NCBI GenBank assembly: GCA_010909165.1
Contig: VJWM01000203.1
Coordinates: 248,001 to 312,000, forward strand
Reading direction: 5' to 3'
DNA length: 64,000 nucleotides
From: Anthoceros angustus
Lineage: Eukaryota; Plantae; Anthocerotophyta
Below are positions 5,201 through 57,090 of the stretch, in pieces. How positions within the stretch are numbered: the first letter of the stretch is position 1; each line of letters begins with the position of its first letter. Position numbers and translations under genes: made by a program. Under the pieces are notes generated by a model, which was given only the letters and a program-made list of their open reading frames with translations, made no database searches and was not told the DNA's origin.

Positions 5201-6242
5201 CAGGCTTCCCGAAAGAACAGTGGTGACTTGGAATGCCATCATAGCAGGATACTCCCAGCAGGGCAAGTGTCAGGAAGCCCTTCGTCTGTACAGCCTTATG
5301 CAGCAAGAAAGCACCATTTCTCCTGATTGTGTCACATTGTCTGCATTCTGCAAGCCTGTGCAGGAGTGGCAGCGTTGCATGTGGGAAGGAAGCTGCATGC
5401 GGAGATAAAAGAACAAGGGCTTCAAGCTGATGCGTCTGTAGCCATCAGTTTGATAAACATGTATTCAAGTCCGGCAGCATGGGTGATGCACAACAGGTGT
5501 TTGATGCATTGCTGGAAAGAGACATTGTCGCCTGGAATGCACTGATTGCTGGATACACTCGTCTAGGAGACAGTGAACTGGTCATTGGGTTGATTCACAA
5601 AATGAGAGAGGATGGATTACAGCCAGATGGCATCACGTTTCTTAGTGTAATAGCAGTCTGCAGTCATGCGGGTCTAGTGGATAAGGGACAAGAATACTTT
5701 GAGACTATGATCAGGCAATATGGCATCACTCCCACCATGCAGCACTACTCATGCTTGGTTGATCTGCTAGGCCGGGCTGGCCAACTGAATGAGGCACTTG
5801 CGGTGGTTAGGACAATGCCAGTACAGCCTCAAGCTGCAGTTTGGCACACTCTGTTGGGTGCTTGTCGAAAGTGGAGCAATGTGGAGGTGGCATCCCATGC
5901 TTTCCACGAAGCAGTAAAGCTTGATGAAAAGATTCTGCAGCATATGTTCTGATGTCCAACATATATATTGGTGCCCAGTTGTGGGAGGAAGCGCAGGAGA
6001 TGCAGGTAAGAAGGAAAGGAGTCAGGGCATGGAAGCAGCCGGGCCACAGCTCGTGGACAGACGGAGATGGTCTGGTTCATAGTTTTCTGGTCGGGGATAA
6101 AAAGCATCCTGAGAGTGACGGCATATATGCAAGGTTGAAACAGCTTGTTCCCGAAACGAAAAAGCAAGGGTATGTGCCACATCTGGACTCATCATGGGAC
6201 ATATCTGATGACGAGGACGAAGCATTTCTGGTGGAGGGTTGA
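2273..6242 (+). pseudogene. PLS-class PPR RNA-editing-factor gene A (E1/E2, PG box, truncated DYW start), frameshifted
   Basis: Repeated motifs LVNMYAKCGSLEDA..VF / VVTWNAMIAGYSQQGMGQEAL / PDSVTFVCLLQACAS across the ORFs. Then PTMQHYSCLVDLLGRAGQLNEA, VWHTLLGACRKW, KQPGHSSWTD..VHSFLVGDKKHP and GYVPHLD. No HxE or CxxC seen afterwards. Confidence 0.9.
2372..2470. repeat. AGC-based microsatellite (AGCAGT/AGCAGG)
   Basis: Direct reading: agcagcagtagcaggagcagcagtagcattagcaggagcagc... Confidence 0.9.
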
Positions 6243-10072: not shown

Positions 10073-11247
10073 GCTGCCACAAACAAATGGCCATCGGGAT
10101 TCACCCTGGACCTGCACATCTGATGATATAGTTGTATTGCCTGCTCGGGTTGCCCGTGTTTAACGTGCGCTGAGATGATAGAAGACCAGGTGAAGGCATC
10201 TGGTTCGGCAACCATGTCAAACACATCCATGGCCTCCTGCAACCTGGCATGAGAAGCATACATTCTCAGGATATGGTTGCACAGGAAGGTGTCCGACTCA
10301 TGCAGCTTTCTCACTGTAAGAGCATGGACACGCCGACCCAAAACCAGATCCTTCTTCACCACACATTTCTTGAGCACACGGTAAAAGAGAGATTGAGGAA
10401 CATGACAGTCTGTGTGCACCAGAAGTCCCAGAGCTTCCACAGCCTCCTTGAGATTGCCCTGCTCACATAGTTTGCTAACGCTCTCAGCTGTTGCTGAAAC
10501 ACCCACAGAAGTCAGCTGCTGTTCACATCTCTTCCCCCAATTTTCCTTTGTCGTTGACGGATCCAGAGGAGGCCCCGCCACCCTGGATGTGAGCGACATT
10601 CTGCGTCTTAGACGCCCATCGTGAGCCAGCTGGGTAAACTCGGAGATGGCCTTGGGCCAGCGGTGGGTGAACGAGCATTTGCTTTCCCGGAGCAGCCTAG
10701 CTCTCCGGCTGTCGCCAGGAAATCTTGAGGCAATGGACGCGAACACTGCACTTTCCGTATGGCCGTCTTGCTCATCTAGATATGGGTACGCATATGAACA
10801 TGAGATATGGAGATGGGTGGTTGTGCCTCCGGCTGGAGCTTGCTGGCTCATGGGATCCTGGGGAACCAACGGGCGTGGCAGTGACGGCACAAAAGAGGAG
10901 GGAGCTATGTCGTGGCGCCCATCTCAATCAGACTGTTGAGGCTTTGGAAGCTCTGCTGCAGGGAGACTGTTGTTTTCCTGTTGCAGACATTCAGACAGAC
11001 AGATTGCTCGGTAGAAGGAACAAACAGGTCGGACCACATGTTTGCTGGGCAAGCTTGGTACTGAAACGAAAGGATCATCACCTGGTGGTGACTGATGGAC
11101 ATCGCACAGGAATGATGTGCAGGAAGCTCGTATGCTCGCATCAAAGAAACGCATCGAATTCCACCTATTCTGCGCTCAGCCAGGCTCGGTGCCGATGGCT
11201 GTCTGGAGCCTTAGAGTTGAGTCAAGCCAAGCGCAACTGGATCGATT

Positions 11248-14200: not shown

Positions 14201-14300
14201 CTAGGCACTTAAGCAACACACCCAAATGAAGTCCCAAACTCACTACGCAATGTCTGCCAGCTGTGCATGTAGCTTCCCAAATGCAGGGCCAGTGGACAGA
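11248..14300 (+). pseudogene. PLS-class PPR gene C, DYW:PG-WW type, degenerate DYW domain
   Basis: A 501-aa ORF (12357-13862) of PLS repeats, then KQPGQSWWTD..VHSFVVGDRK, GYVP and an out-of-frame LCGHSQKLAMS* at 14169-14204. Divergent from gene B. Confidence 0.9.
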
Positions 14301-14689
14301 CATGGCCACATGTCACGGAATTGGGTACAACCATGCCTTCCTGACATCCTTCCGTTCGAGAACCTGGAGACAATCGCTGATAGAATGCAGGGGTCGAACC
14401 TCCCCAGCCCTTTTGCTGACGCCTTTTGCTGACGACTTGGCCTCCCTCAACATTTGGGCCCTTGGCTTCCCCCGTGTGACAACGTCGTCGGCACCTCCAC
14501 AAGCCACGTCAGTTCTGGCAAACAGGCCAAAGATGTTTGTCGTGAATATTTTCGGGATCAGTTTCTTCATAATCTCGCTTTCATCATAATCAGGTTCTTC
14601 GTACAGTACCGTGCAGCAGCTCGAACCCTGCCATCTCATGACACGTACAGCTGCTGGTCCTAAGTCTGCAGTCAAGAGGAAGCTCACTA

Positions 14690-15230
14690 CAGTCGGCCCC
14701 CCCTAATTGGGAATTCTATAAATGGGATTCCTCTCTAAATAGGACCTCCCATCCTACTCCCTTTAGTTTATAATGTAACAAATGGGACTTTTCCCTAAAT
14801 GATAATTGGGACCTTTTGAAGCATACATTCATGTTAGTTTCACCTCCCTAAATGGGATTTCTCATTTTTTTTACTAAAAAAATCTAAAAAAAAGAAAAAA
14901 GAATTCATTATTTCAGAGCTTTATAGACTTTTAGGTGTGATTGAAGACTCTTAAGCTAAGCTTTTTCCTTTATGATAGGTAGAGGTTTTTTGATGCTGCT
15001 TAGAGAGAGTGCTAGCTTTCAAACAACTATATAAAGAACTGGTAAAAGTTATTTTTAGTGAAACCTATCAATCAAAATTTAAATTTTCTTTTTTTTGGAT
15101 ATTTTTTGATTTGTTTTAAAGTTTATAATATTTTTATTATTTTTAAATAGGGAAAATACAATCGGGACACCTCCCTTAATGGGACCTCTAAAGGCACTCC
15201 GAACCAGTCCCAATTAGGGGGGGTGGACTG
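14690..15230. mobile_element. Non-autonomous Tc1/mariner-type MITE (541 bp)
   Basis: 23-bp TIRs CAGTCGGCCCCCCCTAATTGGGA / TCCCAATTAGGGGGGGTGGACTG (2 mismatches). TA on both sides (14688-89, 15231-32). AT-rich non-coding interior. Confidence 0.85.
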
Positions 15231-16598: not shown

Positions 16599-19500
16599 TC
16601 AATTCCCTCTGCATACACGTTGGGCACACCCATGCCACTCCTCGTCCTCCCTCAGGCCTTTTCCGAAATTGCACCTATGCAGTTGGAATATCTCGCCGAT
16701 GTGATCCTTTACCAACGGCTTGACCAGATCCCTCAGGGTAATCCATGCCTCCTTCACGGAAATGTCCTGGTCCGCCGATGGACCTGTCAGGTTGAGATCT
16801 ACCTTGGACAGGTCTGCGTCCAGAGAGGCCGCAGTGAGATACAGCGTTCCATCCAAGCTGGTGAAGGGTCGGGAACCGCATTCCCAATGCCGGCAGCCAC
16901 ATGTAGGCCAGCTTTCACTAGGAAAACCAAAACCTTGATACCTCTGATTGCTAGGGGCCTGATCCACTTCCACTTCGCATCCTCCAATGTCAAGTCGAAT
17001 CCAGTTTGGCCCTCCACGATGTGATTCCCAAAGATATTTTCGCACATGAAGTGCAGCTTAGCCGCTTTGCCCACACGCACCCCTGCAATCAACTCTGTAC
17101 TACACCCACGTCTGCAGTGGTGATGTAGGGACGTCTGGGTATCTGACTGCTTTCTAATTTTGCAGAGAAATTCATAATCTCATCCATCTTAGAAAGCAAA
17201 ATTGTTGAGTAGCTTCCTGCTCAGCCCTGATAGCGCTCATCTCATGTTGGATAAGTTGCAAAGTCTCGCCAATTCTATCCACTTTGACTCCCACTGCTTT
17301 CACCTCTGTCTCCACCATTTTCACGTTGTGCTCCAAAGCTCTTATCCCTTGAATGATGGTTTGCAGTTGCTCCCCATCTCCGAGTGAGTTGTTCCAGGGA
17401 GGGATATAGTACGTCGGACGCTGGCAGACCGAGACGTTTGAACTGGTGCGTCTTGTTGTGCGAGCACCCCTTTCTCTGTAGGCAGGACTTCCTCTACAGC
17501 TGCATCTATGTTGGATATGGTTTGAAGGAGACCTGTTCGTCGCCTTTGCAAGACATCCAAGAGTTCACCAGCACTTAAGAGCTCTTTAGCTCGCTCAAAG
17601 GCATTCTCAAAAGGCTTCAGGACATTCTGGCCACCACCATTTGAAGTCGGCCAGATCCCATGAGGAGAAAATCTCCCTGTACAGTCATGTTGGTCTGCAA
17701 AAACACGCTTCAGCAAATCCTGCGTTAGCACTGACTGATTATGCCGGTAGATACAGAGTGTGAGGTTTTCGACACACTCGGTCCTGATAATTCCTTCCAC
17801 AAGCTCGACTCCCGGACTGCCTTCAGGGAAGCACAAAAGATTTCAACTTTGCAATCACATGTTCCTTGAGAAACTCGATAGTTTCATCTTTGCTCTTGGA
17901 TGACCTCACCAGAATATCGATATGGTCACCGATGTCCCCGGTGTCCTCTCCGATATCCCCACTGCTTTCCAAAACACATCCATACCATCACACCAAAACT
18001 TGATGAGGTTGCGTTCAATACGATATTGATGAGGTTGCATGCCATGGAATCCGAACAAATCCTTTCGAAGGCAGACCTACAATACGCAAACCTCCACAAT
18101 GTCAGTAAACAGGTTGAAGACACACACCATCAAAACAAAGACATGTTGGTAGTTATCGTACTTGGAATCTAGGAAAAAGCCTGGACCAAGAAACGTCTTC
18201 GTCTTGTCAAGGCACTGTAACCTCCTTCCGAGGTAGATGTAATTGCTTGCTGTATCAGCAGTTTCCCAGTTCAACTGTCGTCTCCCAGGATCAGCGTCAC
18301 CATTACCGGCGGCCATGGTGAAGGGAACAAAGAATCCGACACGTCGAGTCCCATCCTCTTCATAGCATAAGTTGAGAGTGGTCATCAATGATACCAGATG
18401 TTGCCTTTCAATCCCCTCCGCTTGTGTGCCTCTGAGAATCTCATCCAAGGTGGAATGAAGCAGACTTTGAGCAACAAATCCATCTGAGGAATACGACAAA
18501 CCTCTAGTAGACGGAGACATGCTGTGGTTAGAAGGTGAATGAGTCGCCCTAAAAATTGTGACTCATCCAGTGTGGATTTATCACCACAACATCTGTATCT
18601 TGAAAACAGATGATACTACCCACATCATGCAAATAGGCAAGAATGGCTCCCAATCGTTCCCCTCATCTTGAACCCCACCTTCGTGGAGACTCTTCAGCTC
18701 GTTTTGGAACAAAGTTTGAAGTTGCTGTTTCCTCACCATTGGTTGAGCTGGATGTTGGGATACCCAGGCAGTCAAATCAGCACTCAATCGGTTGCATACC
18801 TCGGGTACCCAAAACAGTTTAGTTGCAAATAGAGCTCGAAACGATTCCATGAGTGCGTCCAGCAAGGGCTTCACACTCTTGGCAGATCGAGCGTCCATGG
18901 AGAAGAGTGTTTTGTTTCCACGTGAACAACCTGTTCAAACTCGGTGGCCAACTCTGTCAGAACGGGTTGAAGGAGATTGGGTAATGCTTCAGCATCAGAA
19001 CGCTTCATCTTATCCACATGAGTTGCCACCACAAATATTTGAGGCAAAGTAGAGCCCACGTTGCGACAATTGGAGTTGATGAACCTAAGCCAGTACGCCA
19101 AGCTCCTTCTGAACCTGTCCTGCAGGACATTAGACGGATGCACCTGGGGAGGTTTCCGATCATCAAATGGGCTGAACGCAAACAGGAAGATACATGCTTG
19201 GTTGAAGGTCGGAAAAGGTAGTCTTGCAGAGCTCGGTAGTGAGCTTGTCCAGCCAGATCCCACATGGTAACTTGCATATCATGGTCGTTGCGCAACACCT
19301 CGATTTCTATGCCTTCCGTTCTGGTACCGGTGACGGAAGCCATCCGTCGCCAAGCCCGAAATATTTTTCCCTTCAGTCGAGCTAGAACTTGGCTGAGCTG
19401 GAACTCGGGTGATGCGGCTGTGTCGTCTCCATGCGCGAATCATGGTGGTGCGGAGAGTGGTCTTCCTGCCAAAGGGCACCGCACAGGAAGAGGCGCCCAG

Positions 19501-20851
19501 CCTTGGGCCTCACAGGCCCTTGCCTGCCCACGAGCAAAGGCCAGTAAGCCTCTTGAGTGGCATTGCCTGCCAAGGCTGCATTGATGATTGCGTCCTTTCC
19601 TTCCGCTTCCCATGTTGTCCCCACGATGTTGATCTCCCGTAACGTCTTGTTGACTTGAATACAGTTCATCAAGTCTCTAAACATGTCATGATCCAGGGCG
19701 TCCCAGCCAGAAATGTCGAGCTTTTTCAGAGATGCGTTGCCCTCCAAGGATCTCAGCAACTCTTTCTTGAACGAGGCGTGGCCCTCGAGTCCCCTCAATT
19801 TCAGGACACGCAGTGCTTTGCAGTCCGGGAGCAACTGGACAAGGCGCATCCACTCATCCGTCGCAGCTGATGGCGTACTGGAGCCCCAGAGATTAAGTCT
19901 AGATATGGTGGAGTTGTGGCGTAACCCGTCCAGGCCGTGGATGAGAGCATATGGAGTGGTCTCCAGGATCTCGATACGATCGTTGGTGCGCAGCATTCCG
20001 GCCAGGGCGTCTGCCAGGCCTGCCTCCCCATCCTTCGAGATACCCAAATAAAGCATTGTGACGCCAGAGATGGAGGCATTCTCATCCTTATCCGCGCGGG
20101 TGAAAGCAAGTTTGAGCACAGTGGCCATGGGCCCGAGGCCGCCGGGAATGGGACCCCGCAATGCAACGCCATCATCCAACACCAGTGTCCGGAGCGTGGC
20201 ACAGAGCGGAAGAGCATTTGCGATACACTGGGCTCCCGCCACATCCATGCCGATGTTTTGCAGTGACAGACGCTTGAGACGGGGAGCCGTGGCCAGAATG
20301 CGGGCCAGGTGCTGTGCCCCTTTAGCACCTCCCACCTCGTTCCCTTCTAAGTCCAAGTTCTCCAGGACAGAATCCTTGTTGAAGCCTTTGGCCAGGGCAC
20401 CCAGTCCGGCGGCATCAAGCCCAACAAACGGTGCTGAAAGCCTTCGTAAGGTGCGACTGGATGCAACAAGCTGGCCCAGAGCCTCGCAAGCAGCCTGCCT
20501 TCCAAAACCTTTACAAGCACCCACATCCAGTACGTGCAGGTAAGGGTTGGACGCCAGGCCCCCCAACAGAACCGACACTTCATCCTCCCGATCCAAGCCG
20601 ATGGCCCACTCGGACTCAATGCGTATGAACCAGAATTGGCGGCAGTTGGCAATGGCTGTCAACACCCGCTTGCGCACTCGCCAGTGCCTTCCCTCATCAC
20701 CACGGATTCGATCAGTGAAGTAGCCGCCATACTCTTCAACAATATGCAGATCGGGTAGTTCGGGCAAGGCATTCCGGCCCAGATCTAGCAGCAGCTGCTG
20801 CAGCTGAACCGGCAGCGCGCGCCAATCCTCCGCCTCATGCTCTTCCGCCAT
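16599..20851 (-). pseudogene. TORNADO1-like LRR-Roc-COR (ROCO) protein, frameshifted
   Basis: A 489-aa ORF with RI-type LRRs (LENLDLEGNEVGGAKGAQHLARIL; LKRLSLQNIGMDVAGAQCIANAL). Roc motifs ..KTTL (P-loop, split by a frameshift), WDLAGQ and VATHVDK. COR segments follow. The C-terminal KLHFMCE..H.VEGQ..GLHVAAGIGNAVPD matches the TORNADO1 C-terminus. Confidence 0.85.
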
Positions 20852-27932: not shown

Positions 27933-27956
27933 GTCAGGATGGCCGAGTGGTCTAAG
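27933..27956 (+). pseudogene. 5' fragment of tRNA-Leu (acceptor 5' strand + D arm)
   Basis: gtcaggatggccgagtggtctaag followed by unrelated sequence. Paralog of 57068-57150. Confidence 0.6.
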
Positions 27957-28054
27957 AGGAGCGGAGCGTGCGGTGCGGAGCGGTGCGTCCGCTACGCGGG
28001 AGCGGAGCGTGTGGAGGTTCGGTCGGGGCCTTCTGGTTTTCAGGCGGTTCCATG

Positions 28055-35499: not shown

Positions 35500-38400
35500 A
35501 GGACCTCCCATGTCCTCCCGATTATGGCCTCGCGCCTAGTCCTCGACTGCCGCGTGCGAGGCGCTCCCGTTTCTTGGTCGGCTCGAGCTTCAGCAGCAGT
35601 GCCGGTGGTCCCTTGCAGCAGCAGAGGAGGTTGTCCTAGCCGCCTTGCTTGCCGCAGCGCCTAGGGAGTCTCTGGCCGGGCGGGGTTCGCATCCTTAGAG
35701 GAGGACGACATCTCGATCGTTACGCTCCACAACCCCTTCTCCAATTGCAGGCGTGAAGATGAAGAAGAGGAATATAACGCACTGGTGAGGACTGGTTTCT
35801 CACCGCACGCTCGAATATATACCGGAGGAGCGAAGCATTAACGCAATGCATCTGCAGCTTTCACCCGACTCCATCCTACAAGGACTGGAGATGATCCGGT
35901 TGTTGGAGCATCACTTTCCAAAATGATCAACAAGTGGGAGTGAAGAGTTATACCCAAACACACCTCCGTCCGATCACCTCCTCCCGCTTCTCTCCGACGG
36001 TCACCTCCTCCTCAAGACAAAGCATTCAATTGGGCTTTGCAATGGACCGTGTTTTACAACACGGTCCGCTGTAAAAGCCCAATTGTACGTTGTAAAATGT
36101 TTGAGACGGCCAGATCGCCTCTCATGTTTTACAACATACGCATAACCTAATCTAATTTACAACACGATCCATTGCAAACCCTTTACATTGTAAAGCGTTT
36201 AAGAGAGGCCAAGATAGGCCTCCCACAACTTTACAACATAGTCTAATTTACAACACGATCCATTGCAAAGCGCACTTGTATGTTGTAAAATGTATGACAA
36301 GGCCGAGAGGCCTCGCGCCTAGTCCTCGACCACAGCCGAGGGCGCTCCCGTTTCTTGGTCGGCTCAGCTTCCGCAGCGGTCGGTGGTCCCTTGCGGCAGA
36401 GGAGGTTGTCCTAGCCGCCTTGCTTGCCGCAGCGCCTAGGGAGTCTCTTGGTGGCGGGGTTCGCATCCTTAGAGGAGGACGACATCTCGATCGTTACGCT
36501 CCACAACCCCTTCTCCAATTGCAGGCGTGAAGATGAAGAAGAGGAATATAACGCACTGGTGAGGACTGGTTTCTCACCGCACGCTCGAATATATACCGGA
36601 GGAGCGAAGCATTAACGCAATGCATCTGCAGCTTTCACCCGACTCCATCCTACAAGGACTGGAGATGATCCGGTTGTTGGAGCATCACTTTCCAAAATGA
36701 TCAACAAGTGGGAGTGAAGAGTTATACCCAAACACACCTCCGTCCGATCACCTCCTCCCGCTTCTCTCCGACGGTCACCTCCTCCTCAAGACAAAGCATT
36801 CAATTGGGCTTTGCAATGGACCGTGTTTTACAACACGGTCCGCTGTAAAAGCCCAATTGTACGTTGTAAAATGTTTGAGACGGCCAGATCGCCTCTCATG
36901 TTTTACAACATACGCATAACCTAATCTAATTTACAACACGATCCATTGCAAACCCTTTACATTGTAAAGCGTTTAAGAGAGGCCAAGATAGGCCTCCCAC
37001 AACTTTACAACATAGTCTAATTTACAACACGATCCATTGCAAAGCGCACTTGTATGTTGTAAAATGTATGACAAGGCCGAGAGGCCTCGCGCCTAGTCCT
37101 CGACCACAGCCGAGGGCGCTCCGTTTCTTGGTCGGCTCAGCTTCCGCAGCGGTCGGTGGTCCCTTGCAGCAGAGGAGGTTGTCCTAGCCGCCTTGCTTGC
37201 CGCAGCGCCTAGGGAGTCTCTTGGTGGCGGGGTTCGCATCCTTAGAGGAGGACGACATCTCGATCGTTACGCTCCACAACCCCTTCTCCAATTGCAGGCG
37301 TGAAGATGAAGAAGAGGAATATAACGCACTGGTGAGGACTGGTTTCTCACCGCACGCTCGAATATATACCGGGCGAGGAGCTGGGGCGAACGCAACGCAA
37401 TGCATCTGCAGCTTTCACCCGACTCCATCCTACAAGGACTGGAGATGATCCGTTGTTGGAGCATCACTTTCCAAAATGATCAACAAGTGGGAGTGAAGAG
37501 TTATACCCAAACACACCTCCGTCCGATCATCACCTCCTCCCTCCGACGGTCACCTCCTCAAGACAAAGCATTCAATTGGGCTTTGCAATGGACCGTGTTT
37601 TACAACACGGTCCGCTGTAAAAGCCCAATTGTACGTTGTAAAATGTTTGAGACGGCCAGATCGTGCCTCTCTCATGTTTTACAACATACGCATAACCTAA
37701 TCTAATTTACAACACGATCCATTGCAAACCACGACATTGTAAAGCGTTTAAGAGAGGCCAAGATAGGCCTCCCACAACTTTACAACATAGTCTAATTTAC
37801 AACACGATCCATTGCAAAGCGCACTTGTATGTTGTAAAATGTATGACAAGGCCGAGATCGCCTCCGCACGCTTTACACCAAATTCACAACGTAGTCTCAT
37901 GTACAAAGTCCATTGCAAAGCGATCTTGCACGCTGTATACGCCTCGGGCTTCGGTGCCATTGCGGCTTGGGTATTCTACCGATCTCGCCCATCGCCAAGT
38001 CCACAAGGGGCTACCACATCGCTCACGTCCATCGAACATAGTCATGATCCATCAGGCTGTCGACTATGTTAGTTTTTGCTTTGAGGCAAAAGAGTAACAT
38101 GGTCGCCTTCATCACATATAGATTACATGTGCCCTGTGTCGCCACATGATGCATGCACTCGATCCGGTGATGCATCGAAAACATTTGGAAGCATATGTGC
38201 CGTAATGAAGCTCTCCTAAAAAACATAGCATGAGTGCAAGGAAACGGCAGAGGAAGTGGTGGCCACAAGACGACCTTGCTAATTGTCCATCCGAGTTGCG
38301 AACAAAGTGCTCACCTCATGTCTCCCATGTTTCAGCCTCTTGTCCAGGAGTTGAACTCGCTTGTTGTGAATGATGGGTCATGGTGGGTCATGGTGCCTCA

Positions 38401-41100
38401 CCTTCCAAGTGGAGCAAACCGAAAGCTCGAGGTGGCAGCATTTCATTGCCGTTCACGCAAATTGTACAATGTGTCGCCATTTCGACCGCATATGTATTTT
38501 GTTTTACATGGCGACCAATCAACCATACGTGCCCGCTCATCAACTGATCATGTCACTGCCACGTAGCATGGATGACTCACATCTTCTTGCGGGCATCACC
38601 ACCCCGCCAATGCGTCATCCATTATTCAAGACATTTGTACCATGTGATAAAGCAGTGATGGATATGGCATGGCCCATAATATATAACCAATTCGTGTGGG
38701 GTCACGTACATATTCCGAGGTATGCCGGGATGTGATCACCGCATAATGGGAGTTTGGGAGAGAACAACATCGATCATCACACCACCGGGCAAGCCAAGTC
38801 GGTGGTGCACCAAGGAGGGAGCATCTTCAGTACTGCGCTATAGCCTCCAAAATTATGCACGAGAAGGAAAGGATTCCAGGTATGGCAATGGCATTTTAGG
38901 TCTTTTAGTGCCACCATGGGCAAATTGCACGAGTGAGCATGCGTGTTTGGTGTATCAATTCCTTGCACGGCAACTTGCGGTGATTGGCAAGACATTGGAG
39001 TGGTGTTCCAAAGGCGGCAACCATGGATGCCTTGACTTGGATCCCCGCACGGTTGCCTTTGTACTCTATCTCGCTACGAGCTATGGGTTGTCGAGAAGGA
39101 TACACGGGTCCCAAGGCTGGTGGCAGCTTGACATATAATTCGTCACAAAGATACCTTGTTGGTGGCGGGGTTCGCATCCTTAGAGGAGGGCGACATCTCG
39201 ATCGTTACGCTCCACAACCCCTTCTCCAATTGCAGGCGTGAAGATGAAGAAGAGGAATATAACGCACTGGTGAGGACTGGTTTCTCACCGCACGCTCGAA
39301 TATATACCGGAGGCGTAGCGGTGAGCGCAATGCATCTGCAGCTTTCACCCGACTCCATCCTACAAGGACTGGAGATGATCCGGTTGTTGGAGCATCACTT
39401 TCCAAAATGATCAACAAGTGGGAGTGAAGAGTTATACCCAAACACACCTCCGTCCGATCACCTCCTCCCGCTTCTCCGACGGTCACCTCCTCCCGGCTTG
39501 AAGACAAAGCATTCAATTGGGCTTTGCAATGGACCGTGTTTTACAACACGGTCCGCTGTAAAAGCCCAATTGTACGTTGTAAAATGTTTGAGACGGCCAG
39601 ATCGCCTCTCTCATGTTTTACAACATACGCATAACCTAATCTAATTTACAACACGATCCATTGCAAACCACGACATTGTAAAACGTTTAAGAGAGGCCAA
39701 GATAGGCCTCCCACAACTTTACAACATAGTCTAATTTACAACACAGCCCGTTGCAAAGCGCACTTGTATGTTGTAAAATGTATGACAAGGCCGGGATCAG
39801 GCCTCTGCACGTTTTACACCAAATTCACAACGTAGTCTCATGTACAAAGTCCATTGCAAAGCGATCTTGCGTTATACGCCTCGATCGGGCTTCGGTGCCA
39901 TTGCGGTGCTTGGGTATTCTACCGATCTCGCTTCCATCGAGGCCAAGTCCACCACGAAGGGCTACCACATCACACGCATCGAACATAGTCATGATCCCAG
40001 CGGCTATATTAGTTTTTGCTTTGAGGCAAAAGAGTAACATGGTCGCTTCATCACATATAGATTACATGTGCGTCGCCACATGATGCATGCACTCGATCCG
40101 GTGATGATCGTGAAAACATTTGGAAGCATATGTGCCGGTAGAAGCTCTCCTAAAAAACATAGCATGAGTGCAAGGAAACGGCAGAGGAGAGGTGGCCACG
40201 ATCGGCTGACCTTGCTAATTGTCCATCCGAGTTGCGAACAAAGTGCTCACCTCATGTCTCCCATGTTTCAGCCTCTTGTCCGAGGAGTTGAACTCGCTTG
40301 TTGTGAATGATGGGTCATGGTGGGTCATGGTGCCTCACCTTCCAAGTGGAGCAAACCGAAAGCTCGAGGTGGCGTTCATAAATTGTACAATGTGTCGCCA
40401 TTTCGACCGCATATGTATTTTGTTTTACATGGCGACCAATCAACCATACGTGCCCGCTCATCAACTGATCATGTCACTCATGAGACCGGTCACGTAGCAT
40501 GGATGACTCGTTCTCTTCTTGCGGGCATCACCACCCCGTCAATCGTCATCCATTATTCAAGACATTTGTACATGACAGAGTGCAGGATATATCGCCCATA
40601 ATATATAACCAATTCGTGTGGGGTCACGTACATATTCCGAGGTATGCCGGGATGTGATCACCGCATAATGGGAGTTTGGGAGAGAACAACATCGATCATC
40701 ACACCACCGGGCAAGCCAAGTCGGTGGTGCACCAAGGAGGGAGCATCTTCAGTACTGCGCTATAGCCTCCAAAATTATGCACGAGAAGGAAAGGATTCCA
40801 GGTATGGCAATGGCATTTTAGGTCTTTTAGTGCCACCATGGGCAAATTGCACGAGTGAGCATGCGTGTTTGGTGTATCAATTCCTTGCACGGCAACTTGC
40901 GGTGATTGGCAAGACATTGGAGTGGTGTTCCAAAGGCGGCAACCATGGATGCCTTGACTTGGATCCCCGCACGGTTGCCTTTGTACTCTATCTCGCTACG
41001 AGCTATGGGTTGTCGAGAAGGATACACGGGTCCCAAGGCTGGTGGCTGCATTGACATAATTCGTCACAAAGATACCTTGTTGGTGGCGGTCGCATGGCGT
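35500..41100. repeat. Complex tandem array: ~0.78-kb unit x4 plus ~1.9-kb unit x2
   Basis: The SLEEDDISIVTLHNPF..-encoding block recurs at ~35690, 36470, 37250 and 39180. ORF 38722 recurs at 40644 (offset 1922). Confidence 0.85.
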
Positions 41101-41810: not shown

Positions 41811-43599
41811 GCAAGACTACAAAAGGTTAGGAATCACCACTAGTTGTCCATCATAGTGAAGACTAAACCGAGGTTCTTTGAAATCAAGACAGTCATCCCC
41901 ACTTGCCAATTAAGACGATCCATGTAACGTAGGGGTCGTTGTTCAATATCATCCATCATAGCATATGATGGATGTAACCGAGAGAGAACTAGATTCTTGA
42001 ATCAAGAAAAGCTATCCCCACTCGCCAAGACCACATCCATGGTGCTCCCATTCCTCCTCCATAAGATGATCCAGCTGACGTAGGGCGCGTCGTTCTACAG
42101 CTCTCCAGGAGTGTCCAAAATTTGTCAGCTTATTCTCCAAAACCTGGAAGGAGGATTCGCACCGACTCCTCTCGAGGTACTTAGCTGCCAATTTGAGTAG
42201 GCGGGACAACTTCCCTACATCGGGCAGGGAACCCCAAGCCAGCAGATGGCGCCACTTGTTCGCATGGCGACGAAACGGGGAGACTTGTATCACAACCATC
42301 TTGTGAAGCAAGCAGACTGGGGCTATGTCCTCACCTTGTTGACTATGTGTCCTCAACAATGGTCCGAAGGCTCTGTAGGTTTTCCATGTGGACAAGCCAA
42401 AGGCGGCCCAGTACACCGCCCCGCTTGAGTGCGGCATCGCTTTTGAACAGGAGGTGTCCTGGAGAGAAATCATCAACGGTCTTCTTTACTCTTTCCAGAT
42501 CGCCGAGGCAACGCCAAGATCGATACCACACTCAAAGAAAAGAGATTGATTTGTGGCCCAATTCTAGTGCCGGTCATCACCGCTACCAAGAAGCCAAGAG
42601 GTCGATCATCGAAATTGGCAAGAACCACGTCATCGCAACAATCGGTCTTTTCCACCGTAAACCCTTAAACCGAACCGTCTTCCACGTCGTTTGTACTCAC
42701 CATAATTATAATTAAATAAGTGAAATATTTAAGACTTGGGATACTTTTTATACTTATAAGAAAAGCTTTAAAATATTTTTCAACCTATCAATTACCTATC
42801 TATCCTCCCACCTCCACTCCTTATCTATCCTCCCACCTCCACTCCTTATCCCTCTATCGCCTCCCACTCCTTATCCCTCTATCATCTCCCTTCCCCGCCT
42901 TCTCCTTTCCACATAACAAGTCTATTACTCCAACTCTACTATGTAACTCATTGGTCATTATCGCTCACGCTATCATTGTCTTCATCATCCTCACCTATGA
43001 TATCCGCATCCTCATCATCTTGACTCATGTTATCCTCGTCTTGAGCCTCACCTTGTACTATGCGTCTTCCACGCGCTTGTACCCACCACAATTTTCCATG
43101 CATTTTAGAATTCTCATACAAAAGACTTGCTCCACTTTCTCCGATACTAGTACAAATGGCTCATCCTCCAACTTATCATTGGATAACATGACATCGTTAA
43201 CCATGAACATACGAGATGTATCTGTTTTGATGGTCAGTGTGCTCTTTGTTCCATTGAGCCTTGAACCATCTCACCTTCAACACATTTACTTTTTAGACGG
43301 CCCTAAGTCCACCTCCAAAATCTTTTCCACCTTTCCAAAGATAGGGAAAATCTGCTATAATAGGTTCGTGTCCGATGTGAAACACATGCTTGGCTATATA
43401 GATGTTTTATAATGCTATCACATGTATTCTTTCCCTATCGCATCTATAGTCCTTATATGATTTCCATATGCCCACATCATTTTATATGATCGCATGAGGA
43501 GGTCCTCGACAATTGGCCACATCCAACCCATAGGTTTGTACCGCATTTCTTTCTCGCTACTATAACTTCATCTATCAACCATTACGCAAAGGACGTTGC

Positions 43600-46000
43600 T
43601 CGTCTATACCGTCATACACTTTTCGCCATTTTTGAGTACAGCTGAGTTTTCCACTAACACTTTCCTCATCTTGCATTTCCACATCATTCGGTCATAATTT
43701 TGCCATTCCTTGCAATAACACCCACATTGGGTGACATCATCTTGATTTCCACACTCTTGGTGCCTCTTCATGTGTATTTCCAAAGAACTCGAGCTATAAA
43801 ACATTATCTCTTGTGCTAAGTATCCTAAAGCCATGCTACCTTCCGGTCGGGCTTTCGAACAAGTCCCTTTAACACTTTCATGTGCCTTTCTAAGAAATAC
43901 ATCCATCGATATCGAGTTGGTCCACATAATTCAACCTCCGCACAAGATGAACAACAACATGTACTTGACTTGTCGGAAAAGTCGTTGGAAATTCCCTCTC
44001 CAACACACACATGATCTCCACACTTTTCACCTTCATAGCTGGAATTTCATCCTTCGCAATTTCTTTTGAACAAAGCCACGAATAGCTCGGCAAGATCACA
44101 TATAGCCTTGTGAACATCATGATGTATTAATCCTTTCAAGACAATTGGCCACAAATCCGTTAATGATGGTGATGATCATGAGACTTTAACCACGAAATTC
44201 CCTCTTCTCTCCTTTAGAAAACAACGCTTCAAATTTGACCCATACCAGGAGTACGATGCTGCAAATCCTTGTTCTCAATTTTTCCTCTGCATTAGCATAC
44301 ATTCGCCTCTTTTGCTGCCATGTCCAAGAACCTGTGGTGTCGTTATAAATGTCCGTCCCACAGGTTCGCTGTTTTTAGCTTTGCACCCCATTTACAATGT
44401 TTTGGCCTCTTTGTCTCCTTCCAGCGATGGCCTCGCATGGGGCCACCAATCTTGTTTGGTATTTGAATACTCAAGATCTCTCGACTACCAAGGGAATCTT
44501 GATTCCCACATATGTGTGCCAAAATCTGACTTACATTCTTTCCAATGTGCATGATATCAAATAAGTGTCGATCAACAATATCTCGCAACCACCAAATAGC
44601 ATGACTAAAAGTTAACCTTCATGAATAGCTATTAGTCTACCTACCGATGCTACCAATAATATAATTAAAATATTCTTGAAAAGGTAATACTTGCAAGACC
44701 CCATATGCATGCATACATACCTCCCGATGGAAGCTCCCAAAATTGAAGGCTCGCTAGTAACACCCTGACTGTCTTCACCATTGTCTTTTGCATATTTCCG
44801 GTTAAAGCTTTCGATCATAATATCCTCCGGAGTTGGTGCATAGTCCGGATGAATAATTTCCATCTCACCTTTCCATTGAATGAATCCCGCTCTTCCACTC
44901 TAAACTTGTGTTCCTCTGGTAAAATTTTCTAAAATTCTTATCATACGTCATTTTGTTTGTGAACATTGACTTTCTTGCTTCTAATTTGTCCCAACATATT
45001 GGACATGCCCGCTTCCCTTTTGTTTGCATTTTAGAAGTGAAAGAATATCCGGATAATCATGCATCGTCCACAACAATAAGGCCTTCAATTTAAATTGTCT
45101 TTGAGCATTTCCAATAGCCATAGAAGCATCTTGTACGACCACACCTTCCTCCCAAAGTACCTTCAACTCTTGATGAGTGGTTGAAAATATATATCTGCAT
45201 CTTTGACTTGCTTGGACCGTGAATAATCATTGACAACAATATATGCCCATTCTTGATAGATAACCAAGGAGGCGTTATAATTGATAAGAAGCACAGGCCA
45301 TATAGAATACCTAGAACTTTGGTGCCCAAAGGATTAATCCCATCCGTAGCAAGTCCTAATCGAATGTTGCGCCTCCTTAGCAAACTCGGATAAGTGTTGT
45401 CCACATGTTCCCATGCATAGCTATCCGATGGGACCCGCATAATCCCATCATTAGACTTATTTGTGGCGTGCCATGACATCATACTTGCTAGCTCGGACAT
45501 CTAAACATTTGTTTCAATCTAGGAATCAATGGAAAATATCAAGTAGCTTAACTGCACACTGCTCTTCGTGTCAATTCGATACCTATGTTCCCACACATCT
45601 TGCGAATAGCAATTGAAAACTTGTGAACAACATACAATCATCTTGACAAGCATGTATGGATGTATATGTTAGGCCAAACCCTTAAGCATCTTTTTAATTT
45701 CAGCCCTACTTTTGGCAACTTGTTGCCAAAATCGGGAGGCCTAATTTGCCTAGTAATGATAAAATTGAATTCAAAGATGCATCCGACCAGCCATGCCTCC
45801 TTTGGATGTTCAATAACAATAAAATGAATGCCAATAAACTTATCTCGGCTCCAACCCATAGAGGCGTAGTTGCGGTGTGCATCGCCTTTAATTCCTCGTG
45901 CAAGGAATCGACTGTTCTTTAGTCATTTCGCGATGCGAAACCCCACCAAGTGCCTCCACCAACTCTATGGTCACTTGTTCGTCGGGATGAATGTTGACAT
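43600..46000 (-). mobile_element. CACTA transposase (Transposase_21 / DUF4218 region), frameshifted
   Basis: TPLWVGAEISLLAFILLLLNIQRRHGWSDAS; MRVPSDSYAWEHVD..RNIRLGLATDGINP; LKALLLWTMHDYP; FDIMHIGKNV; VELCGPTRYRWMYFLERHMKVLKG; ARPEGSMALGY. Confidence 0.93.
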
Positions 46001-46316
46001 GTTCTTCATCAACCTCAAAATGATCATCAACCTCAATAAAATCTTGTTCCTCTTCAACTGATTATTCAATCACACGCACAAAATAAATATCAAATAAGTA
46101 TATAAAATATTGTAGTACTATATAGAAAAATTATATTATAATTTAATAACTTTAGTATAACCACTATTATTAAGGAAATATTGAACAACATGCAAAACTA
46201 AAAGGTTAAGAAGTCAAGTGAGGAGAGTATATACTAATTGTTTTGTTGCAGATATAGTCAATATACACAAGGTACAAGACCCTCAACATCAACTCTTCTA
46301 CATCCTACAACAAAAA

Positions 46317-47536
46317 CTATTCCACATCCTCGTGCATCAACTTTGCCTTCAATTTCTTCCACTCCATCTGTGCGTAATTTAATGTGTCTATGTACTCTTC
46401 CTGCACGGCCTTCCTTTTGGCCTCAAATGGTTCGGGGTTATACCAACTGTAATCAACAAACAACTCTTCCCCAGCATTAATGGTCCTCACTGCCCAAGTG
46501 CAAATCCAATCAAGATGGTCGTCACTTAGTAGCTCATGCCCATCCGACCTTTCTTCCCAAATGCAATTTTGCTTGATTGCGATATTTCCACTACTACTAT
46601 TCATATATCCTGCCACATTCCCATATGCAACATGCCCATCGAGGTACTCAATTGGGCCATCATTAACATCTTTACGCCGGAGTCTATTGAAAGTCAATGC
46701 ATACTTGAAATAACTTGTTGTAGTTCACTATCTTGTTATATTCTCCTGTATACTTTGGACCCCAAACACAAACAAAGGAACTCCATTCACATTATCTTTT
46801 CTCACTACGATTTTCTCCATGGAAAATAAACCCAACCCCATGGCTGGGTTTGTTGCCTCCTTCACTATCCACCTTCGCCCCAATATAGAAATGACTTGTT
46901 AATAGGAATAGGTCCCTTCTCCCACATTCCCCATTCTCTAGGGTACACGCCTTTCAAAAGATGCTTGTATAAAACAATAGCATCATGAGACTTTGGATCT
47001 TCCCCTCTTTTGGATGATAAGGAGGTGCAATAAAGGGTCCATGGTCCGCCTTTCCATCCAAAGGTTTTCCTACACCGCAAAGCCATGTGTCCACTCCTAC
47101 GCTCGTACTTGTTATAACATGCAAACAATAAACTCCTTCCAACTATAAAAAAACAACCATAATTACACATATGAATAATTAAACTACCTTTAATATAACA
47201 AGACAAACATACTTACCATAATTAGTATGCCACATCAGAATTATTCTATAGATAATATTATATAATTGCTTTATTATTGTATTTTCTAGCATAAAAGAAA
47301 AGGGCTCCATAATTACTTCATTAGTTTATTTCCTAGCATAGAAGAAAAGGATTGCAACTCACAGTTGTGGCTACGGGTGGTTCTCCTTGTTCTGCTATTT
47401 CTTCTCCTCCTCCTCCTTCTCCTCCTCCTCCTTCTCCTCCTCGTTGTTCTTCTCCTCCTCGTCCTCCTTCTCCTCCTCGTTCTTCATCTCCTTGCGGTTC
47501 TCCACCGGGGACTTCATTCTGGGAGGTAAGGTCCAT
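46317..47536 (-). CDS. SET-domain protein (putative lysine methyltransferase) in the CACTA element, with 1-bp indels
   Basis: WIVKEATNPAMGLGLFSMEKI (SET motif I, ~46810-46870). YLDGHVAYGNVAGYMNSS..NC..ICTWAVRTINAGEELFVDYSW (46317-46697). Putative Glu/Gly-rich first exon from ATG 47536, with GTGAGT (47362) and GTAAGT (47216) donor-like sites. Confidence 0.72.
47390..47500. repeat. (CCT/TCT)-rich low-complexity tract
   Basis: cttctcctcctcctccttctcct... It encodes GEGGGGE on the minus strand. Confidence 0.85.
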
Positions 47537-49954
47537 TCTTGCGCAAATGTTTACGTGATTTGGTTAGCTCACGAACTCGCCTTGCACTCTTTGCACCAAC
47601 ATTTTGGAAAATATATTGGATATTTGGGCGCTTAAATCTACGAGCGCGATCCATAAGGACCTACCCTCAACAATGATCGTGGGTTAGCTTAAGCTCGACA
47701 ACACTTGCCCTGCCTTCACCGAGCACGAAAGTGGAGGCTACCTTCGATGAAGTGCTCCGGCCCTCGCTCCAACCTCCGATCCGAAAGCGTAACCGCATAA
47801 ATCGAGCCAATTCTAATCTAGAGCAATTCCATGCAACCGATAACGCGATACTCAAAACGCTTTACAAAGAGCATAGACCTGCAGAACGGACTTGTAGCTA
47901 TCTAGCATCCGGATGGTCGATTTAGGTGTGCACCGTGCTTTTATTGACCCTTGCTACTAGAAGGCCCTCGCCACGCACGATGGAAGGCCCTTCTAGCTAT
48001 GTAGTGGATGGTTAGTAGCCGACAAGAGAAAGGCCTCTTACGGTGCTTATTAGGCGGTCAATCCAAAGCGCTTTACAACACGAGGCGTTGCAAATCGGTT
48101 TGCAACGCCTCTCTTATCAACGCACTCGCAGCAACATTTGCAACGCCAGCACCCAATTCTAATCATGAGCAATTGCATGCAACCGACAATACTCGAAAAC
48201 GCTTTGCAAAGAGCACCGAACGGACTTGTAGCTATCTAGCATCGCGGATGGTGCCGAGCTATGAGAAGGCCCTCGCCACGCACAATGGAAGGCGGCTTTA
48301 TAATCGATGCCGCGAAACCGCGAAGCTTGGCCTCTTACAAGTGCGTGCAATGGTCCAAAGCGCTAGCTAGCGCAGTTTGGGCAATTTGCAAAGCATTCGT
48401 AAAGCACCGTAGTGTGCTATTGATATAGCCTTAGCTTACTTAAGGCGCAAGCCTTTCCTTATTTGCGTGGGACTCAAGATTGTGAAATGTGTGAGCAACT
48501 TTATATCAAAGAAAACTTTACATCACCGATAGGCGATCGTCTTTGCCAACCTCATGTGACTTGGGTAGACTACGAAACCACATTTGTGATGAGTTCATTA
48601 TCACTCGATCCGGCTCGGGTCCGTATCGAGCATAGTCTTCAAAAGCGAAGGTGGCTGCTCGGCTCCATTCGTGATGCCGATTAAAACCTTGAGCCCCAAA
48701 CAAAAATCTACCTTATTAGCATTTATCATGCAAAGAAAGATCACTCAGACTTTTACACTTACGATAGAAGGAGATGATTAGGTTCGGGCACAAGATCTCA
48801 GATTTCTCCCAAAGTCGAGTCATCCGAGTTCCGCTTTCACAAAAGTAAGCCCTTGGAGACCCCGGATCGAGAGTAGTACCAAGCTGTGATGATAGCTGAC
48901 CAAGGCGCAGCGTGGAAGCATGTGACCAAAAACAAGGACGAGTTCCATCCGGAAGGGTGGGACCCTTCTCTTTCTCCGAGGAAGGCTAGGAAGGACGCAA
49001 TGTTACACAACCCTTGTCACAAGGGTCAAAGTTTGCACAATTCATGTGCATCACCTCCTCTTCATCACGCATCTCCTCGACTGGGATCCACCTCGGAAGG
49101 TCCTCGGCCGCCAGTTGTGCCATCACCTCCGGATGGTTCTCGGCCGCCAGTTGTCTACCGCCATCGCTACTCAAAACGCACTTGACGGCCGGGTCGCTTA
49201 ACACAATCGGAGTTCACAACCGAGTTCACAATCGGTCGGACAAACACAATCAGCTCAGTGTGTGACTCACTTTGAGCCGCATAACCGCCCGCACTTGGGA
49301 ACGGATCAGCTATAGAACTATAGTATGCACGAGTTCGCTACTGGGAAACAGGAACAAAGTGACAGCCCCAAGGAGCCCCTTACTCTCAAACTCCATGGCG
49401 TCAAAGAAACCATATGTGGGTCTTTCAACCGTCTCGGCGGTATGGGTGAGAGTGGGTGTGGGCGTTAACGCGGAACCTCGAAATGCGTCGGTGTGCGATC
49501 GAGGATTGAACTCTCATTAGGTACCGCCTAGCCGCTTGTCATCGGCAACATCAACAATCGGCATGATGATGAGTGCCAAGAAGACTTAAATTCTTTAAAG
49601 ACCTGGAGGAGGCGAATCGAGGTTTTAAGACTCGGGCTCAAGTGGATGGCCGAGGAAGCATTGCCCCTTAGCCCTTATTCTATTCATTCCCATGGATCTT
49701 TTACACATTAAAGGGGCACGAGTCCCAAGCAATAGCCTTGAAAGCACCTAAGGGACAACATAGCTACGCTCCATACAATCCCTCTATCCGCCATCAAAAT
49801 ATCTCCGAGGAGCACACTACGCTAAGCGTGCTCAAGCACTGCTTGTCATATCATGCCATTTTCATGCCAATGGTTTCCCTCAAAAGGAAAGAAGCATTAA
49901 AGCTTTATTTGTAGGCTTGCATGGGTCACCATCAAAACCTCATCACTCATATGC

Positions 49955-50270
49955 TTTCCATGACCGCCTTCGGGTAATTGCGAGTTGCGGCATGGGGACC
50001 TCTTCCACTCCTCCAATATTGTGTCCAGATTGAGTTTGATCGGGATGACGAGCTATTTGCCACCGCTGGAGTATCAAGGAGGATAAAAGTGTTTGAGTTT
50101 GCAACGGTGGTCAATGACATGGCGATGTGCATTGTCCCATGGTAGAAATGTCTACCCGCCCAAATTGAGTTGTCCGAGTTGGAACAAGTACATAAAGTCG
50201 CATTGTGCGGTGATTATGAAGGGATTGTTACGATGGGATGTGAATACGTGCGAGCATCACGGAGTATGTG
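49955..50270 (+). pseudogene. COP1: Captured COP1 WD40-region fragment
   Basis: Joining frames gives RLRVIA.LRHGDLFHSSNIVS.IEFDRDDELFATAGVSRRIKVFEF..VVND....CPMVEMSTR.KLSC.SWNKYIKSH....DYEGIVT.WDVNT...ITEY, matching COP1 WD40 repeats 1-2. Confidence 0.85.
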
Positions 50271-55499: not shown

Positions 55500-56490
55500 A
55501 ACAAGGTGCAAGATACAAAATTTACAACAAAGGGCGTTGTAAAACACTTGTTGTAAATATGCCCCATTTAAAGAAGCTGAAAATAGATATTTGTGTTATT
55601 AATAATATTTATTTTTGTTTAAAAGTCTTTATATATATATATATATATATATTACTTAAAAGGGCGTTGTAATTTAAATGATGTAATTGCTTTTGCAATT
55701 GGGATGTTGTAGATGGTTTTGTAAAGCAGTCGTTGTAAAGCGCGTTGTACCCACAGGGCGTCTCAAACTTAGATGTTGTAATTGCTTTTGCAATTGGGAT
55801 GTTGTAGATGGTTTTGTAAAGCAGTCGTTGTAAAGCGCGTTGTACCCACAAGACGTCTCAAACTTAGATGTTGTAATTGCTTTTGCAATTGGGATGTTGT
55901 AGATGGTTTTGTAAAGCAGTCGTTGTAAAGCGTTGTACCCACCGAGACGTCTCAAACTTAGATGTTGTAATTGCTTTTGCAATTGGGATGTTGTAGATGG
56001 TTTTGTAAAGCAGTCGTTGTAAAGCGTTGTACCCACAAGACGTCTCAAACTTAGATGTTGTAATTTTTTGCAATTGGGATGTTGTAGATGGTTTTGTAAA
56101 ACAGTCGTTGTAAAGCGCGTTGTACCCACAAGGCGTCTCAAACTTAGATGTTGTAATTCCAATTGGGATGTTGTAAATGGTTTTGTAAAATGGCACCACG
56201 TCATCACATGGTGATGTGGCAATGAGGGCCATGTCATCAAATTATGCCACGTCATCACCTGATGATGTGGCAATGAAGGGCCATGTGGCAACAACATGCC
56301 ATGTCATCACTTGGTGATGTGGCGGTGATGTGGCGCCACATCACCACTTTAATGACATGGCACTGGAACTGGCCATGTCAGCAATTTTACAACGTCATGA
56401 AGCTCTCGGTTTACAATGGCGTTGCTTACAACGTCGCGTTGTAACACCCGTTGTAAAAACCGTTGTAAAAACCCTCATTTTCTTGTAGTG
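55500..56490. repeat. Right subterminal region: ~95-bp tandem unit x5-6 and GATGTGGC repeats
   Basis: gttgtaattgcttttgcaattgggatgttgtagatggttttgtaaagcagtcgttgtaaagcg..cgtctcaaacttagat recurs; tctcaaac at 55761 and 55856. Confidence 0.9.
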
Positions 56491-57090
56491 ATGGTGAATG
56501 ACTGACACTCTTACTACCTACCCTTGAGCATTACAATTGCATGATTGATCTTCTTGGCGTCTGACCTATCTACATGGGGCAGAGAAGATGCTACTATCAT
56601 GGAAAGGGCTAAAGTAATGTTGTGGGCTTTGTAATCTTTGTAACAATGCTTTCAAAACACCATATCGCCCCTCTCTGTATCCCCATGACTTTTGCAGGCA
56701 AGGTTGGAGCCCCATGAGGGTTGTGTTGTGGTGGCAATTGCCTGGTGGGGATGACTGCAAAATGTGGTATACAGACCAAGATTTGTCCTCTTCCCGCCCC
56801 ACGCACTGCTTATTAAGAAACGCGCCGCAGAGCACGCGATGTAGCATACCAGATCGTGCCCTAATCTTCCTCAGCTTCCCGCAACAAAATATGGCGGAGC
56901 AAGTCAGATCCTGTTAGCGGCGGCTCTTCTCCTCCCTCCGCACCGTAGCCTACATGCAGCGGTAGCACGTGAGTTTTAGCGGGCCAACCCTATCCGATTC
57001 CGTATAGTTGGAGATAGAGATTATTTGTACAGTTTACATTATTGTAGATTCAATTTGTCACCATCCAGTCAGGATTGCCGAGTGGTCTAA
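56491..57090 (+). repeat. Direct paralog of ~27085-27956 (PPR remnant, lectin 5' region, tRNA) with internal deletions
   Basis: ctacctacccttgagcattacaattgcatg... through gtcaggat.gccgagtggtctaag is shared. Confidence 0.9.

Follow-up and report, generated by a model that had tools for sequence, protein, structure and literature searches.

We analysed a stretch of 64,000 nucleotides from Anthoceros angustus (Anthocerotophyta), positions 248,001 to 312,000 of the forward strand of contig VJWM01000203.1 (assembly GCA_010909165.1). This whole stretch is called the window below, and positions are counted from its first letter. A reading of the letters alone, without database searches (the sequence-only reading), had proposed that a CACTA transposon lying here encodes its own SET-domain gene, directly upstream of the transposase. 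The three SET motifs quoted in its favour are present, all on the minus strand: AMGLGLFS in the open reading frame (ORF) 46728-46883(-), GNVAGYMNSS and AVRTINAGEELFVDY in the ORF 46317-46697(-). When the C-terminal piece (46320-46697(-)) was run against the Pfam SET profile (PF00856), a check that had been suggested at the time, it scored 26.8 bits for a cut-off of 22.4 (E 7.4e-6). The 51-aa piece containing AMGLGLFS gave no meaningful Pfam match on its own; this N-terminal piece was seen only with a family hidden Markov model (HMM), built from 42 database relatives without the window sequence. The family HMM matched 46320-46724(-) with an E-value of 3.6e-22 (HMM positions 164-255) and, colinear with this C-terminal match, 46731-46898(-) with an E-value of 1.6e-9 (HMM positions 100-145). 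No further match to it was detected anywhere in the 64-kb window. Judged from these profile comparisons, the SET similarity of the window pieces is real and far beyond chance. The SET gene, the transposase and the element that contains them are laid out as follows.

46886-47142, minus strand: pre-SET region (SGHM...LYxxLLxG...EWGMW...IN..F.YWG), homologous to the related loci L017 and L019, in a frame that differs from that of the SET core
46880-46885 (about), minus strand: 1-nt frameshift at the YWG/RRWIVKE junction, from the alignment to L017 and L019
46731-46898, minus strand: N-terminal SET core, with a WGRRW-type motif and the GxGxF motif (AMGLGLF) that binds S-adenosylmethionine (SAM), from the family HMM
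46725-46730, minus strand: two consecutive in-frame stops, TAG TGA, inside the conserved core, from the alignment to the relative P0008
46317-46724, minus strand: C-terminal SET core (YALTF, LDG, GNVAGYMNSS, NCIWEE, AGEELFVDY) and a short tail, with the native stop at 46317-46319
46062-46316, minus strand: AT-rich spacer from the SET stop to the transposase body, about 255 nt (127-420 nt in relatives)
42951-46061, minus strand: decayed TnpD-type transposase, with an acidic N-terminal region, Transposase_21, DUF4218 and a DUF4216-like tail
28055-56490, minus strand: whole CACTA element from one terminal inverted repeat (TIR) to the other, 28,436 bp, with CACTACAAG termini

Both SET pieces lie in one frame, and the TAG TGA stops fall between the FVFG and YALTF segments, where the relatives read straight through. 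One nucleotide has been lost at the YWG/RRWIVKE junction; the alignment with L017 and L019 indicates that the pre-SET region was once continuous with the SET core. The SET gene of the window is a pseudogene. The six family-wide invariant residues (given below) can all still be read in this broken copy, which has retained AMGLGLF and EELFVDY.

The transposase does lie directly downstream of the SET gene and on the same strand, as had been claimed, and shows at least six frame changes. Its Pfam match to Transposase_21 (44868-45500(-)) falls into three ORFs that overlap in different frames, and that to DUF4218 (43607-44120(-)) into two ORFs; the DUF4216-like tail occupies 42951-43501(-). With a SET gene interrupted by two stops and a frameshift, and with a shattered transposase, the window copy has no activity of its own.

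The left TIR (CACTACAAGG) lies at 28055(+) and the right one (CACTACAAGAAAA) at 56490(-), and the element is flanked on both sides by ATG (28052-28054 and 56491-56493), a 3-bp target-site duplication (TSD). Duplications of this length are typical of CACTA transposons. It is the TIR pair and the two ATG copies that bound the element and give its length of 28,436 bp. Subterminal repeats of the TTACAACG type occur at both ends, clustered at 28 kb and at 55-56 kb. TIRs, a 3-bp TSD, a TnpD-type transposase and subterminal repeats are thus found together, as in CACTA/En-Spm elements. The window element is a dead, bloated (28.4 kb) CACTA/En-Spm copy, and its SET gene and transposase are a pseudogene pair.

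The zinc-finger remnant described below, the SET gene and TnpD form a core of about 5 kb (42.9-47.6 kb) with a GC content of 0.37-0.44, AT-richer than the rest of the window (about 0.45-0.55). The AT-rich character of the core had been recognised in the sequence-only reading and is borne out, but the GC-rich flanking host genes with which it had been contrasted are not: they lie inside the same 28.4-kb TIR pair and are without Pfam identification. A 2.4-kb stretch was contained in a single public DNA run, 254 contigs of which matched it at an identity of at least 85% and showed many single-base and indel variants; coverage was as heavy over the SET part as over the transposase part. Such a pattern suits a multi-copy repeat, for which the contig count gives no copy number.

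Linkage, co-divergence and selection in relatives

An exhaustive search of 1.84 billion cluster representatives with the window SET piece returned ten matches: seven short SET-family proteins, which share GN[IVL]AG[YFL]INS[SC] and E[LI]LV.Y.W, and three unrelated long proteins. No canonical plant SET class was found within E 1e-3 of the piece among these representatives, and no host SET donor was found. A profile search gave 46 proteins, of which three belong to Calypogeia fissa, a leafy liverwort; the ESM Atlas cluster is assigned to Streptophyta.

At all eight independent loci that were long enough, the SET ORF was followed on the same strand, at a distance of 127-420 nt, by Transposase_21, DUF4218 and DUF4216. 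The linkage was read on L003 and L004 (C. fissa), L005 and L006 (ERZ25039513), L007 (ERZ27311014), L008 (ERZ12298656) and L009-L012, the latter being one contig found in eight Logan runs. According to Pfam, the TnpD ORFs of these relatives are intact or nearly so, and no Transposase_24 (TnpA-like) match was recorded for the called genes of L005-L009. Both genes are enclosed by CACTACAA termini in L005, L006 and L008, with the TIR about 0.2-0.7 kb past the end of TnpD in L006 and L008, and subterminal repeats of the TAGCGACCC type are present in L005 and L006. The exact ends of L005, L006 and L008 are less certain than those of the window element because their TSDs do not match. Multiple family members therefore carry a SET ORF inside the TIRs and beside the transposase, which is what characterises DNA transposons with a SET accessory gene.

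In L004 (CBCUJL010000017.1, 4436-20510) one element is nested within another, a P0019-type element having its place between the SET gene and the TnpD of a P0041/L007-type element.

L004 inner element: SET 9629-10507, TnpD 11138-14850
L004 outer element: SET 4436-5226, TnpD 16971-20510, of a lineage only about 40% identical to the inner one

This nested pair indicates that a single liverwort genome harbours two SET-CACTA lineages that are deeply diverged. L007 and the outer element of L004 each combine a P0041-type SET with an L007-type TnpD.

The two genes have diverged together. Pairwise identities of SET and of TnpD gave a Pearson r of 0.95 and a Spearman coefficient of 0.77 (nine elements, 36 non-independent pairs, no p-value), and between lineages SET identity was 27-50%, about as for the transposase. 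The maximum-likelihood trees of SET and TnpD agree at every supported node, namely those joining L003 with the inner element of L004, the outer element of L004 with L007, and L005 with L006, and the clade of L003 and the inner L004 element with L008 and L009. The ratio of nonsynonymous to synonymous substitution rates (dN/dS, Nei-Gojobori) of SET was 0.34 for L003 against the inner L004 element, 0.29 for L007 against the outer one and 0.24 for L006 against L005; for TnpD segments of the same three pairs it ranged from 0.08 to 0.37. These ratios indicate that the SET ORF is under purifying selection in the relatives.

Checked in relatives, linkage and selection thus came out in favour of the proposal, with SET followed by TnpD at every locus long enough, low dN/dS and no close host SET clade. 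Taken at the level of the family, where linkage, co-divergence and selection agree, the idea of a dedicated element gene is upheld; it does not hold for the window copy itself, which is a pseudogene. On these comparisons, SET is a standing, old and co-inherited component of a CACTA lineage of liverwort-type plants, and we are highly confident of the structural and evolutionary claims made so far. L017 (1850-2490) and L019 (190-900), the closest relatives of the window SET at about 40% identity, are pseudogenes as well, L017 with a stop replacing the Trp of its YWG motif and a frameshift late in the ORF, L019 with several stops. No intact member of the window sub-lineage was found, the best identity being 42%.

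The candidate first exon

The region upstream of the SET gene in the window contains three features.

47581-47601, minus strand: decayed CxCxxC zinc-finger motif (CWCKEC), remnant of a Transpos_assoc-like first exon, followed by two in-frame stops
47395-47536, minus strand: purine-rich low-complexity tract, open in all three frames, with Gly/Glu-, Glu/Lys- and Arg-rich readings
47143-47362, minus strand: 220-nt AT-rich segment, candidate intron or insertion, its donor being GTGAGT (47362) and its acceptor a polypyrimidine-AG that ends at 47143, the first exon base being 47142

The sequence-only reading had spliced the SET gene to an acidic Gly/Glu-rich first exon. As stated, this part of the proposal was not borne out. 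The Gly/Glu-rich ORF (47333-47536(-)) is the purine-rich tract, which is open in all three frames, and it gave no meaningful match in Pfam; the best canonical splice pair (GTGAGT/AG) joins the SET frame to the Arg-rich frame instead. L017, the closest relative, is devoid of the 47143-47362 candidate intron. The tract is probably the counterpart of the acidic linker that separates the zinc finger from SET in the relatives, with a frame that is ambiguous here.

What the relatives show at this place is a zinc-finger exon. A zinc-finger ORF lies 100-450 nt upstream of the SET ORF in nine of them (L001, L002, the inner element of L004, L005-L009 and L017). It has a Met start, a basic patch and a Ser/Asp/Glu-rich stretch, then ends on C.C..C(13)H(4)G, in which the Cys, His and Gly are invariant among these relatives. 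Five of seven zinc-finger exons had sub-threshold Pfam matches to Transpos_assoc (PF13963; E 3e-4 to 0.085), all to the same part of the domain. The exons of L005, L001, L006 and L007 had no Pfam match, and the assignment to Transpos_assoc is based on the sub-threshold matches of five other exons. As a rule, CACTA transposases begin with Transpos_assoc; no match to this domain was obtained for the ORFs at the N-terminal end of the TnpD bodies.

Strong AG/GTA donors follow the zinc finger, and in silico there are phase-compatible acceptors both before the SET exon and before the TnpD body. In L006, for example, the donor at 9107, which is in phase 0, could be joined to an acceptor lying 100 nt downstream, within the SET exon. 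It would fit equally well with a TAG/GT acceptor at 10381; starting there, the TnpD frame is open even ahead of its first ATG. Enumeration of the splice phases in L006-L009 found compatible acceptors for joining the zinc finger to SET and to TnpD, with none for the zinc finger-SET joint in L008.

Remaining DNA of the window element

Beyond the core, about 20 kb of the window element consists of GC-richer DNA; the intact elements L005, L006 and L008 are only 6-10 kb long. Eight interior and C-terminal ORFs of the 28-kb element gave no Pfam match at E<=0.01, and captured host genes were not confirmed among them. A COP1-like fragment inside the TIR pair (49955-50270) was likewise unconfirmed, its ORF 49978-50142 having no Pfam match at the same threshold. 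Internal direct repeats occupy 35679-41100: a 300-nt block recurs at a spacing of 774 nt, with two copies 100% identical, and a second pair, also 100% identical, is spaced by 1,922 nt (38669 and 40591). TTACAAC motifs of the subterminal type cluster at 36-39 kb, inside the element. These repeats and the motif cluster could correspond to a second, internal element end or to a recent local duplication.

Tandemly repeated units of about 94 nt, which resemble one another at 90-92% and contain the GTTGTAA/CGTTGTA motif, make up the right subterminal region (55600-56200); on the minus strand they give rise to long artificial ORFs. Positions 27935-27960, immediately beyond the left TIR, contain a tRNA-like 5' half (GGATGGCCGAGTGGTCTAAG). 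Since ARAGORN called no tRNA in the window, this half is truncated or part of a tRNA-derived repeat.

Function of the SET gene and relation to known systems

The fold of the family protein was judged on P0041, an intact relative, rather than on the broken window copy. An AlphaFold2 model of P0041, made from the 42-sequence alignment, reached a mean predicted local distance difference test (pLDDT) score of 83.7, with values above 90 over most of the SET core. When this model was compared with the PDB by Foldseek, the top matches were all SET methyltransferases (LegAS4, SET8, MLL1/3, G9a, EZH2, ATXR5), with more than 300 matches at E<=1e-3. According to the model, the family protein folds as a SET domain. 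Across the 42 sequences, whose mean identity is 28%, Y169, G191, N204, N216, E252 and Y257 (P0041 numbering) are invariant and GxGxF nearly so; these positions are SAM-binding and catalytic sites of the SET fold. The best solved match was LegAS4/RomA (PDB 5czy, 8swi, 8sr6), with a profile E-value of 3e-4 over the whole domain and a Foldseek E-value of 7.5e-8. It has in common with the family a motif without His (YINFS, against YINSS in the family) and a downstream N-A-E-(W/F)-V-E stretch. It differs in being a bacterial effector with ankyrin repeats, at about 24% identity and outside any transposon context. LegAS4 is an active methyltransferase of lysine 14 of histone H3 (H3K14; PMC10653858; bioRxiv 10.64898/2026.05.29.728679), a specificity that the likeness does not imply for the family.

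The explanation that we favour, with somewhat better than even confidence, is that the window holds a dead copy of a SET-bearing CACTA lineage whose SET gene serves the element. The standard gene set of this lineage comprises three parts: a first exon (start codon, basic patch, acidic low-complexity stretch, CxCxxC...H zinc finger of the transposase type), a SET ORF of about 260-325 codons that has a stop codon of its own, and a TnpD body with Transposase_21, DUF4218 and DUF4216. The SET protein would methylate lysines on behalf of the element, most likely marking the chromatin at or near it, either to counter silencing or to mark the target or the element ends. Purifying selection on SET, in step with the transposase and down to about 27% identity, argues that the gene is needed for the success of the element. 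That the protein is an active methyltransferase serving the element is, in our judgement, about as likely as not. As to its expression, the SET protein may be made from the promoter and first exon of the transposase by alternative splicing, like TnpA and TnpD of En/Spm; we put this shared-first-exon model forward tentatively and find it rather doubtful. Carried further, it would have one promoter and one zinc-finger exon spliced either to SET or to the transposase, so that a self-targeted writer marks element ends or target chromatin and thereby evades silencing or steers integration. This extension is speculative and, in our estimation, also on the improbable side; if true, it would be a new solution to the job done by TnpA in maize En/Spm.

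Several observations weigh against the favoured explanation. The window sub-lineage (window, L017 and L019) is broken in all its members and may be extinct. The splice-phase test does not discriminate, a compatible acceptor being expected by chance in about one third of cases. The zinc finger was joined to SET in none of 83 retrieved database proteins, a weak argument as most of these are intron-blind ORF calls, and the sole candidate RNA run yielded neither contigs for the stretch nor splice joints, a result that does not show silence. In the SET domain itself, about 69 of 72 family sequences have Ser where the NHS motif has His, the Asn being invariant and the window reading NSS; the post-SET cysteine region, and with it the zinc cluster, is absent, and relatives score only marginally above the cut-off on Pfam SET (18-30 bits). 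The change from His to Ser could mean that catalysis has been lost, and these features of the domain would suit a SET module that is conserved but catalytically inert, with a binding or adaptor role towards histone tails or a host methyltransferase complex. We consider this unlikely, as the residues kept at about 28% mean identity are the catalytic and SAM-contacting ones (GxG, Asn, Glu...Tyr of ELxxxY). Moreover, LegAS4/RomA, the nearest solved relative, also has no His in this motif yet is an active H3K14 methyltransferase (PMC10653858), so that loss of the His alone is no argument for a dead enzyme.

Another possibility is that SET is part of the transposase polypeptide, in a spliced fusion of zinc finger, SET and TnpD that would be an element-borne counterpart of SETMAR. 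The sole Transpos_assoc-like zinc finger does lie upstream of SET, and the first TnpD ORF is in the SET frame in three of the four intact loci, but such an agreement is expected by chance with p of about 0.11. Furthermore, in every intact SET ORF a stop comes a few codons past the terminal Tyr motif, a conserved splice donor is lacking up to and including this stop, and the spacer from SET to TnpD is AT-rich and full of stops; a fusion appears quite improbable. Least probable of all, and largely refuted at the family level, is a passively captured host fragment in the manner of Pack-CACTA elements, its conservation being due to recent copying. The window element, with its SET pseudogene and the 20 kb or so of extra DNA beyond its core, would look like such a case. 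Among the relatives, however, gene order is the same where the SET proteins are only 27-50% identical, SET and TnpD trees are congruent and SET dN/dS is 0.24-0.34, which refutes a one-off or neutral capture in the family as a whole; the search of 1.84 billion representatives also speaks against it, since none of the canonical plant SET proteins came within E 1e-3 of the window piece.

En/Spm obtains TnpA and TnpD by alternative splicing of a single transcript; TnpA acts against the silencing of the element by methylation. A first exon shared by the SET exon and the TnpD body would work alike. The difference is that no Transposase_24/TnpA-like gene was seen here, that the second protein would be SET, and that splicing is phase-compatible in silico only. 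A comparison by role, and not by sequence or fold, can also be made with VANC of VANDAL, a Mutator-like element (MULE): VANC is a sequence-specific DNA-binding protein that induces hypomethylation (Hosaka et al. 2017, as cited in PMC12730594). Like the proposed SET protein it is a transposon accessory protein proposed to change the epigenetic state of its own element, but it is not a SET enzyme. In SETMAR of primates a SET domain is fused to the Hsmar1 mariner transposase (PMC9062482). There too SET and DNA-transposase domains are encoded side by side, but SETMAR is a host gene that captured a transposase, whereas here SET lies inside a TIR-bounded element and the intact ORFs stop before the transposase.

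Closer parallels are found in other DNA transposons. SET histone-methyltransferase genes are known from HarbingerS and from MuDR of Phytophthora (Kojima & Jurka 2014, as cited in PMC12730594). By their description, these are cut-and-paste DNA transposons with a SET accessory ORF beside the transposase, like the window family, but they belong to the PIF/Harbinger and Mutator superfamilies and to other hosts, and SET was likely acquired independently in them and in this CACTA lineage. Capture of a SET domain has also been reported for Helitrons. The Plavaka elements of red algae carry an accessory gene, PAG2, with a DNA-methylase (PF01555) and a SET domain (PF00856) (bioRxiv 10.1101/2025.02.11.637652). 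Again compared by description, they share with the window family a SET accessory gene in an element of the EnSpm/CACTA superfamily; PAG2 is one of three accessory genes in elements of 17-19 kb, whereas the present family has a small SET-only ORF and an upstream zinc-finger exon in a land-plant CACTA with Transposase_21, DUF4218 and DUF4216. The sequence-only reading knew of no such gene in CACTAs. For land plants this stands, as we found no report of a SET gene in a CACTA of these hosts (Repbase Reports and subscription journals were outside the search), while for the superfamily the red-algal Plavaka is a precedent. A DNA transposon with a SET accessory gene is therefore already known, and the land-plant CACTA version, with a SET lacking the His and a zinc-finger exon, is new.

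Chromatin or DNA modifiers carried by transposons are rare; the known cases are VANC of VANDAL, fungal elements with TET/JBP, and the SET genes of HarbingerS and Plavaka. For the window itself the result is modest, the element being a dead copy. More generally, transposons with chromatin or DNA modifiers of their own testify directly to an epigenetic arms race with their hosts. If the SET protein of this lineage is active and guided by the zinc finger of the transposase, it would be a compact and naturally targeted writer of histone or other protein marks, and the manipulation of plant chromatin by a DNA transposon would become directly testable in liverworts.

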